Assembly (NCBI GenBank): GCA_013416795.1
Contig: RQSC01000722.1
Coordinates: 1 to 45,890 of the forward strand
Length of the DNA: 45,890 nt
Direction: 5' to 3'
Source: Prasinococcaceae sp. CCMP 1430
Taxonomy: Eukaryota; Plantae; Prasinodermophyta
In this document: positions 7,705 through 29,339 of the stretch, piece by piece
How positions within the stretch are numbered: position 1 is the first letter of the stretch
How the letters are laid out: every line of letters starts with the position of its first letter
Program-made: the position numbers and the translations under genes
The notes under the pieces: model-generated
Told to the model about the DNA's origin: nothing
The model's database searches: none
What the model saw: the letters and a program-made list of their open reading frames with translations, nothing else

Positions 7705-9089
7705 ATGGCGGCCCAGATGCGCGCGTGGCGCGCCGGCGCGTACGCGCCCGGCGGCGACGTGGCGGCGGCGCTCAAGGCGGGCACCGCGGTGTCGCTGGAG
7801 CGCCTGCCGGTGCCCGCGCCCGCCGCGGGCGAGGTGCGCGTCAGGGTGTCGTACGCCGCGGTCAACCCCATCGACTGGAAGCTGCTCACCGGCGGCCTGC
7901 ACGCCGCGGCGCCGGTGTCCTTCCCCGCCACGCTGGGCTTCGACCTGTCGGGCGTGGTGGACGCCGTGGGCGCCGGCGTGGACGACCCCGAGCTGGGCGT
8001 CGGCGCCGAGGTGATCGGCAACACGGGCCTCGCCGAGACGTGCAAGCTGCCCCCGCCGGCCGCCGGCAGCTGCGGCGCCATGGCCGAGTACGCCGTGCTG
8101 CCCGCGTCGTGCGTGGCGCCGTTGGCGGGCGCCGGGGTGGGCCTCAAGGAGGCGGCGGGGCTGCCGCTGGTGGGGCTCACCGCGTACCAGGCGCTGCGCA
8201 CGGGCTCGGGCGGCGTGTCCATGGTGGACGGCGGCCCGCTGGGCGACCTGCGCGCGGGCGACAAGCTGCTCGTGCTGGGCGGCGCGTCGGCCACCGGCGC
8301 CTGCGCGCTGCAGATCGCGCGCGCGCTCAACGACGCGGCGGGCGACGCGGGCGAGAAGGCGGGCACCATCGCCACCACCGCCTCGTCGAGCCTCATGCCC
8401 GACGGCAAGACCACCAAGATCGACCACGTCAAGAGCCTCGGCGCGACCAAGGTCATCGACTACAGGACGCAGAAGTGGGCGGACGAGCTCGAGGGCGAGG
8501 GCTTCGACCTCATCTACGACGTGGTGGGCGACGCCGCCGACCTCGCGGCCGCGCCGCGCGTGCTCCGCAAGGGGGGGCTCTTCGTGTCCACCGCCAACTT
8601 CGACCCGGCCAGCAAGAGCACCGAGGTGCGTGGGAGCGCGCGAGGCGCGTGGGTGCGCGCGTCCGGTCGGCGCGCGCGTGTGTGGAAGGGTGTTTGTGTG
8701 TGTGTGTGTGTGTGCGTGTGTGCGCGCGCGTGTGTGTGTGTATGTGTATTTGTTCGCGTGCGTGTGTGTCCTGCAGAAGCGTGTGGGTATGCACGTCAAT
8801 TGACGCCACGACACACTCACACAAACATGCGCACGCGCACCTCTGGCGCACGTGCGAATGCGCGCGGCCATGCGTTTGCGCGGACCGCAACGCGCAGGAC
8901 GTGCGCTTCGCCAACTTCTTCTACGCCGCCAACGGCGCCGACCTGCGCGAGCTGGTGCGCCTGGCGGGCGCCGGGGCGCTGAGCGTGGGCGTCGAGAAGG
9001 TGTACGCCGTCGATGAGCTCCCCGCGGCCATCGAGAGGTCGATGAGCGGCAAGGCCAGCGGCAAGCTGCTGCTCAAATTCGAGGAGTAG
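7705..9089 (+). CDS. NADPH:quinone oxidoreductase-like protein (MDR / zinc-type alcohol dehydrogenase-like superfamily)
   Basis: Exons 7705-8625 and 8898-9089, phase-0 GT-AG intron. Motifs GEVRVRVSYAAVNPIDWK, TLGFDLSGVV, AAGLPLVGLTAYQAL, LLVLGGASATG, LGATKVIDY, FDLIYDVVG, GKASGKLLL. Confidence 0.9.
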
Positions 9090-9221
9090 CGCGCAGGCAC
9101 GCGACTGGTATGAGCGCGCCCGAGCGACGCGCACAGCCCGAGCACGCGAGAAGTTACGCGAGTTATCACAGACGCGAAGATGTACAGTGGCAAGAGCACA
9201 TCGCCCTACCACTTTTATATA

Positions 9222-9226
9222 TGTAA
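9222..9226 (+). promoter_or_regulatory. Candidate UGUAA polyadenylation signal of the quinone reductase gene
   Basis: TGTAA about 130 nt after the stop. UGUAA is the known chlorophyte poly(A) signal. Minus-strand TGTAA also lies at 22148-22152 and 36822-36826 downstream of the VOC-like and EEP genes. Confidence 0.4.
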
Positions 9227-9273
9227 AGAGGCATCTCGCAGACAACATCAATGTGCTGCCTCGAGCAGCGGGT

Positions 9274-25625: not shown

Positions 25626-25845
25626 ACTGTAGTCTAGAGTACTAGTCCTAGTGTAGACTAGCTAGTACTAGTACTAGTCTACTGTAGTGGTCTACTGTGC
25701 AGTGTCTAGCTAGACTTGACTAGTCTACTGTAGTCCCCTACAGTAGGACTACTGGACAGTACAGTACTGTAGTCACTAGTCTACAGTAGTACTAGACTAG
25801 ACTAGTCTAGTCTAGTCTACGTACTGTACTGTTACTATTGTAGGG
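25626..25845. repeat. CTAG/GTAC/CTAC-rich palindromic low-complexity patch
   Basis: Perfect palindromes at 25662-25677 (16 bp), 25704-25715 (12 bp), 25760-25771 (12 bp) and 25791-25816 (26 bp); direct repeat ACTAGTCTACTGTAGT near 25673 and 25720. Confidence 0.9.
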
Positions 25846-26023
25846 TGTAACATTGATGTCGCGATGCACTCGCAGACGCAGCACGCATCTGTGCCTTTGT
25901 AGGAGAGCTGGACCTTTCGAAGTGTACACGTGCGTGTGCCCACGCGTGCTTTACGGCGTGCTGCTGCAGACATCGCGCGCGAGAGGGCGCGAGAGGGCGC
26001 GAGGCTCGCGTGCGTGCGCGCGC

Positions 26024-29000
26024 TCACTTCTTCTTGGCGGCCTTGGGCTTCTTGACGGCGCCCTTCTTGGGGCCCTTGAGCGCCTTGGGCGCGCCGCGCT
26101 TGGCGGGCGGCTCCTCGACCTCGTCGTCGGGCGCGGTGTACACCTGCGCGCGCGGGGATGCGTGGAGGGTGTGCGCGCGTGCGCATGCGTGTGCGTGCGT
26201 GGACGACACCGATAGTGTGCGTGTGCGCGCGCATGTGTGCGCGTTAGGCCGCGCGCGTGCGATCGACGACTCCGCACGCTCGCGCAAGCGCGCGAACGTC
26301 CCCGCGCGCTCGCACCTTGAACTCCTTCTCGAGGAGCTTGACGTCCTCCGGGTTGGACGTGTCCACGAGCGCGAGCGTGTGGCCCGCGCCGCACGCCGTC
26401 TGCAGCGTGGTGTAGCCGTCGAGCGCGTCGACGATCTTCGGGTTGGCGCTCGACTTCTTCGCCTCGCCGAAGCCCAGCTCGCCGTACAGCGCCGTGCCCC
26501 AGTTGACCACCTGCGCAGGCGGGGGCAGACACGCGCGGGGGCGCGCACGTGCAAGCGGATGCGCGAGCCTGCGTGAGCCGACGGCCGGGACGCGCGCCCG
26601 CGAGGCACGCGCACCCACTCGCACGCGGACTCGCACGCACGCGCGCGTGCACACGCAAACACACGCACAAACGCGCGCGAGCGAACACACACGCGCGCGC
26701 ACACGCAAGCACACGCACCTTGAACTCCGAGGCGATGGAGGTGGTCACCCCGCCGCACGCCGCCGAGCGCAGCTGCCAGCCGCTGAGGTCGTACATGGGC
26801 TTGGGGTACATCCAGTTGTCGCCGGTCACCTTGATCTTGCCCCACATGAAGAGCTGGCCCTGCGGGGCGCGGACGCGGCGCGCCGCGCCGACGTGCGTGT
26901 GTGGGCGTTTGTGTGCGCAGGCGCAGGCGCGTGTGTGTTCGCGGAGGCAATTGCCGAGGGAATCGCCTGCGTGTCAGCACGCGCGTGTATCGCCGCGCAC
27001 ACACGCACGAACGTACACACACAGACACACGCGCACACACAAGCACCTGCACACACGCAAGCGCGCCCCCTCACACGCACAGCCACGTGCGCCAGCTCGC
27101 GCGCCTCGCACCTGCACGCCGCACGCGAGCGACATGGTGGCGCCCGCGGCGATGATGGCGGGCGTGTCCGTGGGGATGGCGTTGCGCTCCGAGAAGAAGG
27201 CGATGCGCTTCGGCTCGAGCTCGTCCTTCTGCACGTTGTGGCCCAGGCGGCCGTAGCCGCCGTCGCCCCACGACCACAGGCCGCCGGACTCGTCGGCGGC
27301 GAGCGAGTGGTGCACGCCGCACGTGATGGCGCGGACCTTGAGGGATGGGCGGGCGTGCGTGTGTGTGCGTGTGTGCGTGTGTGTGTGAGGTCGTGTGTGC
27401 GTCAGTGAAAGCGCACGCGTGCATTTCCTGTCTCTTTGTCGCACCTGAGGGCGCGCGTGCCACGCGATGGCAGGCGCGGATACAGACACGCGGAGACAAG
27501 CACAGACACGCACAGACACGCACACACACACACAAACATGCACACACACACACGCATACGCGCACGCACTCACCTTGACGCTGGCGATCGGCCCGTGCAC
27601 GGGCGCGGGCCGCGGGTGCGGCTCGAAGGCGATCTTGATGCTCGCGGCGCTCGTGTTGTAGTCGCCCTCGGTGCCGTTGCCCAGCTGGCCGTGCTGCGGC
27701 ATGCCGCACGCGTACACCGAGCCTGCGGGGCGGGAAGGCGAGCTCGCCGTGTCAGGGCCTCGTCGGCGTGTGTGTGTGTGTGTGTGTGTCTGTGTGTGTG
27801 TGTGTGTGTGTGTGTGTGTGTGTGTGTGTGTGTGTGTGTGTACGCGGGAGAGAAGGGAGCGGAGGGGGGGCGAGGGCGCTTACAAACACGCAGGCACGCA
27901 CACACGAACACACGCGCCCGCAGACGTATCTATTCGCGCAATCACACGCCACCCAGCACACACAGCACACGCGCGCGCGCGCACACACGCACGAGCACGC
28001 GCGTGCGCGCTGCCCCGCACCTCCCGCGAGCATGACGGTGAACTCGGCACCGCACGACACCGCCGACACGTTGGCGAGCGCCGCCTTGGCGGGGGTGCTC
28101 ACGCGCGGCTCGGGCACCTGGGTGCATGCATGCGTGTGTGTGTGTGTGTGTGTATGTGTGTGCGTGTGTGCGTGTGTGTGTGTGTGTGTGTGTGTGTGTG
28201 TGTGTGTGTGTGCGCGTGCGTGTGCATGCGTGCGTGTGTGCGTAAGCGCGCGAGCGATAAAACGCATACCTGTGTGTGCGCGTGTGTTTGCGCACATAGA
28301 CAGATGCAACTGCGTGCACGTGTGCATGTGCTTGCGTGTGCCTGCGCTCACACGCACACACACACACACGCACACGCACGACCGTGTACAGCGCACGCAC
28401 CTTCTTGGTGGCCCCGCCCGTGCCGTGCCCGAGCTGCCCGTAGTTGTCCGCGCCCCACGTGTAGAGCTCGCCGGCGTCGGTGACGCACGCGGTGTGGTGC
28501 TTGCCGCACGCGCCGCTCGCCGCGCGCGCGCCGCCGGGCAGCGCGACCTCGCACGGCGCGTTCCGGTCCATCGTGTCGCCGAGGCCCAGCTGGCTCGCCT
28601 GAGGTAAACGCGTTTGTGTGTGTGTGTGTGTGTGTGTGTGTGTGTGTGTGCGTGTGTGTGTGTGTGTGTGNNNNNNNNNNNNNNNNNNNNNNNNNNNNNG
28701 TGTGTGTGTGTGTGTGTGTGTGTGTGTGTGTGTGTGTGTGTGTGTGTGTGTGTGTGTGTGTGTGTGTGAGCGTGTGTGCATGTGTGTACGCTCGCGCGTG
28801 CTTGCGCACACGTGTGCGTGTGTGTGTGTGCGTGCGTGCGTGTGTGTGTATGCGCGTGTGCGTGCGCTCGCGCGCACGCGCGCGCTTTGGCGCCGCCACG
28901 CACCTCGTTGCGCCCCCACGCGAAGAGCCTGCCATCGGCCGCCACGGCGAGCGAGTGGCACGCCGCGGGGCCCGCGGCGACGAAGGCGATGCGGACGCCC

Positions 29001-29339
29001 GCCAGCGGCGCCAGGCGCACCGGCGAGTACTGGTTGGGGTACTTGTCGGTGTCGTGCGGCTTGTTGGAGCGCTGCTTGCGTGTGTGTGTGTGTGTGTGTG
29101 TGTGTGTGTGTGTGTGCGTGCGTGTGCGGACGCGTAGGTGTGAGCCGATTGCGCTCGGCAGGTTCGTCTCTCGCGCGCACACACGCAGCAGCGTTTCGCA
29201 CGCGCACACACAAACGCGCGCACCTGCACACACACGCACACACACACACACACACAGACACGCGCGCGCTCGCGCCACGCACGCCGACGACGTTGGCCTT
29301 GGTGCAGCCGTAGAAGAGGAGCTCGCCGCCGCCCGCCAT
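26024..29339 (-). CDS. RCC2: RCC1-repeat protein, RCC2/TD-60 orthologue
   Basis: Nine exons: 29339-29283, 29071-28904, 28598-28401, 28117-28021, 27722-27574, 27336-27112, 26859-26719, 26510-26316 and 26143-26024. RCC2-type segments LLFYGCT, LFAWGRNE-SQLGLGD, CGAEFT, GMPQHGQLG, WSWGDGGYGRLGHNVQKDELEPKRI, MYPKPMYDLSGW, YGELGFGEAKKSS. The final stop could alternatively be read as a GTGAG donor. Confidence 0.88.

Follow-up and report, generated by a model that had tools for sequence, protein, structure and literature searches.

Polarised GT-to-CA repeats in the introns of a prasinodermophyte alga and their relation to the splice sites

Background

When the two halves of an intron are filled with complementary dinucleotide repeats, is their order set by pairing of the halves or by the splice sites that they adjoin? 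This question is raised by a 45,890-nucleotide (nt) stretch of nuclear DNA from a marine eukaryote, Prasinococcaceae sp. CCMP 1430 (GenBank assembly GCA_013416795.1, contig RQSC01000722.1, positions 1 to 45,890 of the forward strand), which is referred to as the window and has a G+C content of 68%. Its part between 7.5 and 29.4 kb holds eight genes, and the 26 curated introns studied here are spread over seven of them, within one 21-kb stretch (8626-29282). A preliminary description of the window had counted about 14 of 26 introns with a GT tract in the 5' half and a CA tract in the 3' half, had seen none with the opposite order, and had suggested that the introns may be defined by a long GU:AC hairpin or by UG- and CA-binding proteins that mark each end. 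The polarity stands; a need of splicing for the hairpin is not supported.

Order of the repeats

The intron repeats are polarised, and this polarity is restricted to introns. Classified by halves, 11 introns are GT followed by CA, 4 are GT followed by a mixed half, and 2 are mixed followed by CA, a close match to the earlier count. The remaining introns have CA (6) or GT (3) in both halves, and the CA-to-GT class is empty (0 of 26), exactly as first reported. GT skew is higher in the 5' than in the 3' half of 24 of the 26 introns (binomial P = 1e-5, Wilcoxon P = 4e-7). Regarding switches of repeat type along the sequence, there are 15 from GT to CA and 0 from CA to GT inside introns, in comparison with 7 and 7, respectively, in intergenic and untranslated regions (UTRs; Fisher P = 0.002), and 5 and 19 across exons. 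The share of bases that belong to repeat tracts is 69% in introns, 38% in intergenic DNA, and 1.8% in exons.

Because (GT)n...(CA)n is unchanged by reverse complementation, the polarity reads alike for genes on both strands and is silent on the direction of transcription. The arrangement (CA)n...(GT)n is a distinct one, found only outside introns, e.g., in the palindrome at 10559-10664. In the papers searched, no description of polarised GT/CA introns from any alga was found.

Intron models and reliability of the tracts

Pfam matches support five of the eight genes, i.e., four with introns (ADH, cupin, C2, and RCC1) and the intronless ankyrin gene. Contigs from four RNA runs, aligned to 25950-29400, yield the eight introns of the RCC1-like gene; after permitted shifts all eight read CT..AC on the forward strand, which corresponds to GT..AG on the gene strand. 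In addition, intron 8626-8897 is absent from a 100% identical JGI transcript contig (L001). Thus, 9 of the 26 introns are confirmed by RNA, with exact removal from the mRNA seen there, and the other 17, several of them around exons with Pfam matches, were placed using open frames without stops, GT-AG ends, and continuity of split codons. All 26 have GT-AG ends, including the eight that the preliminary description had given as examples. Exons were searched one at a time, and frames were bridged across introns for stop checks only. The automatic lists of coding segments and intron candidates were too noisy, and the curated, frame-checked models were used instead. An Rfam search of the window gave no match.

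The 3' part of the Cys-rich gene E (18739-19869), where no gene model was reached without RNA, is omitted from all counts. Its CA-then-GT succession of tracts could conceal a CA-to-GT intron, which would be a counter-example to the observed order. A candidate intron at 18739-18917 is conserved in wild scaffold L031, and the same stretch includes a possible terminal coding exon on the minus strand (19405-19492) with a pyrimidine-rich acceptor and a TAA stop.

As for the tracts themselves, they are not assembly artefacts, since TARA scaffolds of wild relatives (92-98% identical) have them at the same sites. The CA-only intron 28599-28903 is real, because RNA contigs join its flanking exons, and its length is an estimate owing to the gap inside its repeat. 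The repeats do disrupt assemblies and gene models at this locus, as seen from the gaps (Table 1), the gene end without a model, and a possibly flipped tract.

Splice sites

Donors follow the consensus (A/C)AG|GTGCGTG, in which the odd positions are G up to +7 and, more weakly, up to +11; positions +1, +3, +5, and +7 are G in 23-26 of the 26 introns, and +4 is C in 20. Acceptors end with CGCAG|G and have C at odd positions from -3 to about -25 in 13-25 of the introns. Purines and pyrimidines alternate in register with the donor in 16 introns and out of register in 5 (P = 0.03); for the acceptor the counts are 17 and 5 (P = 0.02), and this signal fades with distance from the splice sites. The early remark that most acceptors lack a pyrimidine tract is borne out: at least 70% pyrimidines at positions -23 to -4 are found in just 4 of 26, the median U content of this segment is 10%, and the T content over the last 70 nt is 5-9%.

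The repeats had been described as (UG)n next to the donor and (CA)n next to the acceptor. The first half of this statement is not universal, since in 7 of 26 introns a CA-type repeat begins no more than 55 nt from the donor. UG-type arms, by contrast, always stop short of the last 55 nt before the acceptor (minimum distance 58 nt; P = 0.01 against the 7 CA-type cases near the donor). The firmest rule is that no UG-type repeat occurs in the last 55 nt or more of an intron. For CA-type arms, the gap to the acceptor is 0-37 nt in 21 of 22 introns and 60 nt in the intron of the ADH-like gene; between the donor and a UG-type arm it is 1-49 nt. GT-only introns close with a non-repeat tail, which contains CTGAC in introns 13924-14154 and 17044-17347. 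In layout, each intron resembles a single UG-type stretch with a single CA-type stretch after it; the switch point floats and may sit at either end.

Positions +2 to +5 of the donor (UGCG) are the reverse complement of positions -5 to -2 of the acceptor (CGCA), so that the termini pair with each other in predicted folds even in introns without arms. Intron ends form inverted repeats, UGCGUG (+2 to +7) against C-N-CGCA (-7 to -2) plus the arms, which are made of splice consensus and microsatellite.

Predicted hairpins

Hairpins between the arms are indeed predicted, but no test showed a need for them, and the suggestion that they define the introns is not supported as far as a requirement goes. 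Both arms are present in 14-15 of the 26 introns. Predicted folds of two-armed introns have energies of -0.45 to -0.63 kcal/nt, and 37-163 base pairs link their two halves, the maximum belonging to intron 23988-24450 (predicted dG = -270 kcal/mol, 163 cross-half pairs), in comparison with -0.2 to -0.33 kcal/nt for the weakly folding CA-only introns. According to shuffled controls, fold z-scores range from -2 to -7.8 for two-armed and from -1.4 to -5.1 for one-armed introns.

The two arms behave independently. They co-occur in 14 introns vs 15.3 expected under independence, i.e., without excess, and Spearman correlation of their lengths equals -0.22 in two-armed introns (n = 16) and -0.50 over all introns. 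Native arm pairs are predicted to fold no better than swapped ones (-106.6 vs -104.8 +/- 2.3 kcal/mol, P = 0.21). Moreover, RNA confirms splicing of introns without a full pair of arms, namely CA-only 28599-28903, GT-only 26511-26718, and the nearly repeat-free 26144-26315. Pairing alone cannot account for the polarity, because the hairpin is equally stable in either orientation. The data look like two independent preferences, each anchored at its own splice site, which would agree with UG- and CA-specific marks at the two intron ends.

Wild relatives and intron turnover

Relatives were reached through exon-sized open reading frames (ORFs) and exact look-ups in metagenome scaffolds; a metagenome scan with one RCC1 exon found distant homologues only (34-60% identity). 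The arms change length independently in the relatives. The GT arm of intron 8626-8897 is about 78 nt longer in scaffold L027, while its CA side is the same, and the GT and CA arms of intron 18292-18563 measure 151 and 58 nt in the window, 212 and 58 nt in L030, and 160 and 32 nt in L031, respectively. The GT arm of intron 17044-17347 grows from 184 nt in the window to 268 nt in L030, and the CA-first state of intron 14756-15053 is kept in the TARA scaffold L033. The latter intron also contains, at 14780-14850, about 6 copies of a 12-nt unit, GCGTGCGTACGC, which is present in L033 as well.

Intron 17588-17832 has (CA)27 at 17609-17664, where L030, L031, and L032 have (TG)16-20 between identical flanks. 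This exact strand flip reflects either a true inversion polymorphism or a mistake in the reference assembly.

Intron positions turn over in this lineage. A metagenome contig of a more distant relative (L029:1-805, 63-79% protein identity), compared with 27112-28598 of the RCC1-like gene, has one open frame across four intron positions of the window. It carries one conventional intron, at 511-704, at a site unoccupied in the window; this intron shows a GTATGT donor, a CACTGAC motif, and a T-rich tract. This comparison covers a single gene with no outgroup, and gain and loss are not separable in it. A recent introner family was considered as the source of the introns and is unsupported: all-against-all BLAST of the 26 introns gave low-complexity matches only, in both orientations, with no shared unique sequence, and junction microhomology of 3.42 nt vs 3.41 nt in mismatched pairs (P = 0.50) reveals no target-site duplication beyond the splice consensus, from which a duplication of 2-3 nt would be indistinguishable.

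Explanations of the polarity

The reading that we prefer, while giving it only an even chance of being right, is that the polarity results from two demands for compatibility with the neighbouring splice signals, each acting independently of the other on filler that is prone to slippage, and that complementarity is a by-product. The introns would be spliceosomal GT-AG introns of the ordinary kind, with an interior made up to about 70% of microsatellite of alternating purines and pyrimidines. On the donor side, a G-pyrimidine repeat (GT or GC) extends the unusually long consensus AG|GUGCGUG in register, and on the acceptor side a C-purine repeat (CA or CG) likewise extends (C-purine)n-CAG|G. The stricter of the two rules would bar UG-type repeats from at least the last 55 nt, the part in which the acceptor and branch-site adenosines are presumably read and in which GU repeats would mimic donors, and the looser one would favour UG-type repeats on the donor side while tolerating CA-type. 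Slippage would then extend each tract inward until both meet, with a single change from GT to CA at no fixed place and none in the other direction. Complementarity would be an automatic outcome, with the predicted hairpin as its consequence; it might be tolerated or mildly helpful but not needed. Observed are the polarity, its confinement to introns, the register of the tracts with the splice sites, the independent behaviour of the two arms, and the removal of one-armed introns; that splice-signal compatibility is the cause, and that the tracts grew by slippage, we infer.

Several points weigh against this reading. GT-to-CA modules are present directly ahead of three start codons, too (12905-13134, 21199-21676, and 25095-25326), and splicing cannot explain every such unit, because no AG is seen between tract and ATG at 12905-13134 and 21199-21676. 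The reason offered for the exclusion of UG-type repeats near the 3' end is an inference. The predicted mutual pairing of the termini in arm-less introns leaves room for a structural role, and at n = 26 the power is low, so that a small effect in arm co-occurrence would escape detection. Furthermore, the sample is limited to these 26 introns of one 21-kb stretch, and the intron at 17588-17832 is CA in both halves only in the reference, which means that some exceptions may be recent changes or assembly errors.

A structural role is the core of the hairpin idea, according to which (UG)n and (CA)n pair co-transcriptionally, bring the splice sites together, and stand in for the U-rich pyrimidine tract. 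The strong predicted folds of two-armed introns, the rarity of pyrimidine tracts, and a teleost precedent with experimental support, though of opposite polarity, all favour it, as does the position of the outermost long-range pair, which in many predicted folds is separated from the donor by 0-4 nt and from the acceptor by 1-2 nt. It is nevertheless unlikely: arms show neither an excess of co-occurrence nor a positive length correlation, native pairs are no better than swapped, CA-only introns fold weakly, one-armed introns are spliced, and wild relatives alter one arm alone. In addition, either polarity would work, leaving the absence of CA-to-GT introns unexplained, and pairing of the termini would conceal both splice sites. 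The order could also be a filter on intron origin, with repeat palindromes of both polarities arising and only (GT)n...(CA)n, which gives a 5' GT and a 3' CA(G), becoming or surviving as an intron, so that GT-to-CA introns would be young, lineage-specific gains. Both polarities do occur outside introns (the palindrome at 10559-10664 has the opposite one), the tracts are in register with both splice sites, the relative in L029 is open across four intron positions with one conventional intron elsewhere, and RCC1-like exons between introns measure 97-225 nt. Yet the introns have only low-complexity similarity in common, their junctions carry no duplication beyond the splice consensus, the donors are GTGCGTG and not GTGTGTG, and intron loss in that relative fits the single gene compared equally well, which makes an origin filter quite doubtful.

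The most improbable of the explanations places the asymmetry in DNA mutation, independently of splicing. Breaks in nucleosome-poor noncoding DNA, followed by 5'-to-3' resection, would leave the top strand exposed in the left part and the bottom strand in the right part; C-to-T changes in (CG)n-like filler would then turn the left part into TG and the right part into CA. Given the way in which resection is known to proceed, this would predict the strand-symmetric GT-left, CA-right order that is observed, and it would also suit the GT-to-CA units upstream of start codons, two of which have no AG before the ATG. However, intergenic order is mixed (7:7), the first and last tracts of intergenic segments are of no consistent type, and the register with the splice sites is left unexplained. 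A mutation-accumulation study of Prasinoderma coloniale, which applies if the organism is P. coloniale, bears on both sides, since it reports a higher mutation rate in introns, but neither a GC-to-AT bias nor hypermutability of methylated C.

Beyond the preferred reading of two splice-site compatibilities, a bolder suggestion, which we advance tentatively and think improbable, is that an early-branching alga of the green lineage swapped the U-rich tract and branch-site signals for UG- and CA-type repeat marks, read by repeat-binding factors, by pairing, or by both, with (GT)n...(CA)n palindromes as the raw material of recent intron gain and the only polarity that supplies both donor and acceptor. 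If the polarity reflects reading by the spliceosome, the alga offers a natural case in which the majority of 3' splice sites do without a U-rich tract and in which repeat type alone could mark the intron ends; U2AF-independent recognition of 3' splice sites and the choice of branch site would then become testable outside vertebrates. Comparison with teleosts, whose polarity is opposite, could separate effects of pairing from those of repeat sequence, and the relative without four introns makes the locus a lead on intron gain and loss in compact algal genomes.

Comparison with known systems

The closest precedent is the (AC)m-(GT)n introns of teleosts and lamprey, with AC after the donor and GT before the acceptor (Lin et al. 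2016, Genome Res, PMC4691745), a polarity that the preliminary description had given correctly. Both systems have complementary AC/GT repeats at opposite ends of one intron, a very stable predicted bridging hairpin, and repeats that obscure the pyrimidine tract and branch site. Unlike in fish, the order here is reversed in every two-armed intron, with UG after the donor and CA before the acceptor. Fish arms co-occur above independence, long with long, which is not so among the 26 introns. Finally, pairing was shown to be necessary in fish, with U2AF2 dispensable, whereas one-armed introns are spliced here.

In Chlamydomonas and Volvox, GT/AC is the dominant tandem repeat of introns, enriched toward intron-exon junctions (Zhao et al. 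2014, G3, PMC3887541). These are likewise GC-rich green algae with intronic GT/AC repeats. That study, however, pools GT with AC and reports no strand polarity, inverted arrangement, or loss of the pyrimidine tract, whereas repeats fill 69% of intron sequence here. In comparison with canonical U2-type introns, GT-AG ends and a donor consensus are present, and the U-rich polypyrimidine tract is mostly missing.

Introner elements, reportedly described by Huff et al. in 2016 from Micromonas, Aureococcus, and others, resemble the present introns in their short length (about 140-460 nt here) and in the exons of about 100-225 nt between them, and may resemble them in inverted-repeat ends and in lineage-specific positions, four positions being empty in one relative here. 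The introns of Aureococcus itself number 0.4-0.9 per gene, have a mean length of 103-177 bp, and use GC-AG donors in 14-17% of cases; this genus and Emiliania were considered as the source of the window and rejected. They differ in that the present introns have no family-wide similarity and no target-site duplication beyond the splice consensus. A survey of introners explicitly filtered out low-complexity candidates (Gozashti et al. 2022, PMC9860276).

As for pairing within introns, the ‘zipper’ stems of yeast are said to join the 5' splice site to the branch point (attributed to Goguel and Rosbash, 1993, and Libri et al., 1995). In both cases intramolecular pairing would shorten the effective distance between splicing signals, but yeast stems are short, conserved, and of unique sequence, while those predicted here are about 40-160 bp of microsatellite with free register. 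In vertebrates, intronic repeats are bound by splicing regulators, TDP-43 or CELF on (UG)n and hnRNP L on (CA)n. These are similar in using dinucleotide repeats near splice sites as marks for protein binding; they act on single introns, and not on genome-wide intron architecture. A 3' splice site is used less readily when UG repeats are close to it (discussion in Lin et al. 2016, PMC4691745), which would fit the exclusion of UG-type repeats from the last 55 nt.

Features of the window

Table 1. Introns, genes, assembly gaps, and repeat tracts of the window. Letters with numbers name introns by gene; repeat types are listed in intron order.
Feature	Positions	Strand	Remarks
A1, ADH-like	8626-8897	+	GT arm, then weak CA arm; absent from L001 transcript
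C2, cupin gene	11584-11923	-	GT to CA; skew +0.93 / -0.77; frame-consistent GT-AG
C1, cupin gene	12179-12506	-	GT to mixed/CA; cupin Pfam matches on exon
D3, C2-domain gene	13924-14154	-	GT-only; CTGAC motif ahead of AG
D2, C2-domain gene	14308-14656	-	CA-only
D1, C2-domain gene	14756-15053	-	CA-only; (CA)n begins 10 nt from donor
E1, Cys-rich gene	16639-16893	+	GT to CA; same arms in wild scaffold L030
E2, Cys-rich gene	17044-17347	+	GT-only; CTGAC motif, C-rich tail
E3, Cys-rich gene	17588-17832	+	CA to CA in window; GT to CA in three wild scaffolds
E4, Cys-rich gene	18292-18563	+	GT to mixed/CA
F2, cupredoxin-like gene	20435-20629	-	GT to CA
F1, cupredoxin-like gene	20774-20954	-	GT to CA
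G6, secreted protein gene	22602-22780	-	CA-only
G5, secreted protein gene	22982-23120	-	GT to CA, arms nearly abut; 80% purine-pyrimidine alternating
G4, secreted protein gene	23222-23382	-	GT to mixed; donor GTAAGT
G3, secreted protein gene	23542-23791	-	GT to CA; acceptor placed by frame
G2, secreted protein gene	23988-24450	-	GT to CA; longest intron; 93-nt pure repeat; one N
G1, secreted protein gene	24720-24953	-	CA-only
H8, RCC1-like	26144-26315	-	GC-rich, weak tracts only; spliced in contigs of four RNA runs
H7, RCC1-like	26511-26718	-	GT-only; RNA contigs
H6, RCC1-like	26860-27111	-	GT to CA; RNA contigs; position empty in L029
H5, RCC1-like	27337-27573	-	GT to CA; RNA contigs; position empty in L029
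H4, RCC1-like	27723-28020	-	GT to CA; CTGAC ~33 nt before AG; RNA contigs; position empty in L029
H3, RCC1-like	28118-28400	-	mixed to CA; RNA contigs; position empty in L029
H2, RCC1-like	28599-28903	-	CA-only; gap 28671-28699; RNA contigs; 4 predicted cross-half pairs
H1, RCC1-like	29072-29282	-	GT to CA; RNA contig with 3 unplaced letters at joint; ends and frame checked
Gene, ADH-like (introns A)		+	Pfam-supported
Gene, ankyrin, intronless		-	Pfam-supported
Gene, cupin (introns C)		-	Pfam-supported
Gene, C2-domain (introns D)		-	Pfam-supported
Gene E, two Cys-rich repeats		+	frame-based model
Gene, cupredoxin-like (introns F)		-	frame-based model
Gene, secreted protein (introns G)		-	frame-based model
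Gene, RCC1-like (introns H)	introns within 26144-29282	-	Pfam-supported, RNA contigs
3' part of gene E	18739-19869	+	tract order GT, CA (307 nt), GT, GT; holds gap 19621-19634
Assembly gap	16376-16467		coding exon; frames taken downstream of gap only
Assembly gap	19621-19634		inside (GT)n tract of omitted stretch 18739-19869
Assembly gap	28671-28699		inside repeat of intron 28599-28903
Single N	24309		in (CA)n of intron 23988-24450
Intergenic repeat palindrome, opposite polarity	10559-10664		(CA) ~21 units, short spacer, (GT) ~23 units
Upstream (TG)n-type tracts	10559-10600, 13017-13134, 15315-15451, 16053-16147, 21525-21676, 25206-25326, 29401-29588, 39912-40049	coding strand	

Repeats and motifs outside introns

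In eight of nine genes, the coding strand has a (TG)n-type tract 50-480 nt ahead of the start codon (Table 1), and this is a strand-dependent promoter or 5'-UTR feature, distinct from the introns. A short CA-type tract directly precedes the ATG in three genes, in two of them with no AG between tract and ATG. The palindrome at 10559-10664 is followed by a cluster of GT, CA, and GT tracts at 10860-11120. In the 5' UTR of the ADH-like gene, the (CA)n tract at 7565-7607 is transcribed, since contig L001 crosses it; the part of L001 upstream of this tract was not found in the window, and the contig is probably chimeric across the repeat. Another CA tract (40333-40418) falls within the apparent ORF of the gene starting at 40100, with no clear GT donor just upstream, and is either coding (His-Thr repeats) or an unrecognised intron.

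Several telobox-like words (AAACCCT or AGGGTTT) occur in intergenic sequence at 10720-10790 and 15790-15990, one of these regions being the divergent promoter region between the C2-domain and Cys-rich genes. Two low-GC stretches (25590-25850 and 29680-29790) with CTAGT or ACTGTAG-like words and imperfect periods of 6 and 16 nt sit upstream of the minus-strand start codons at 25065 and 29339. Finally, at 40712-40959 a 126-bp unit is duplicated in tandem with 97% identity, and each copy has a perfect (CTA)18-19 tract followed by CA repeats.

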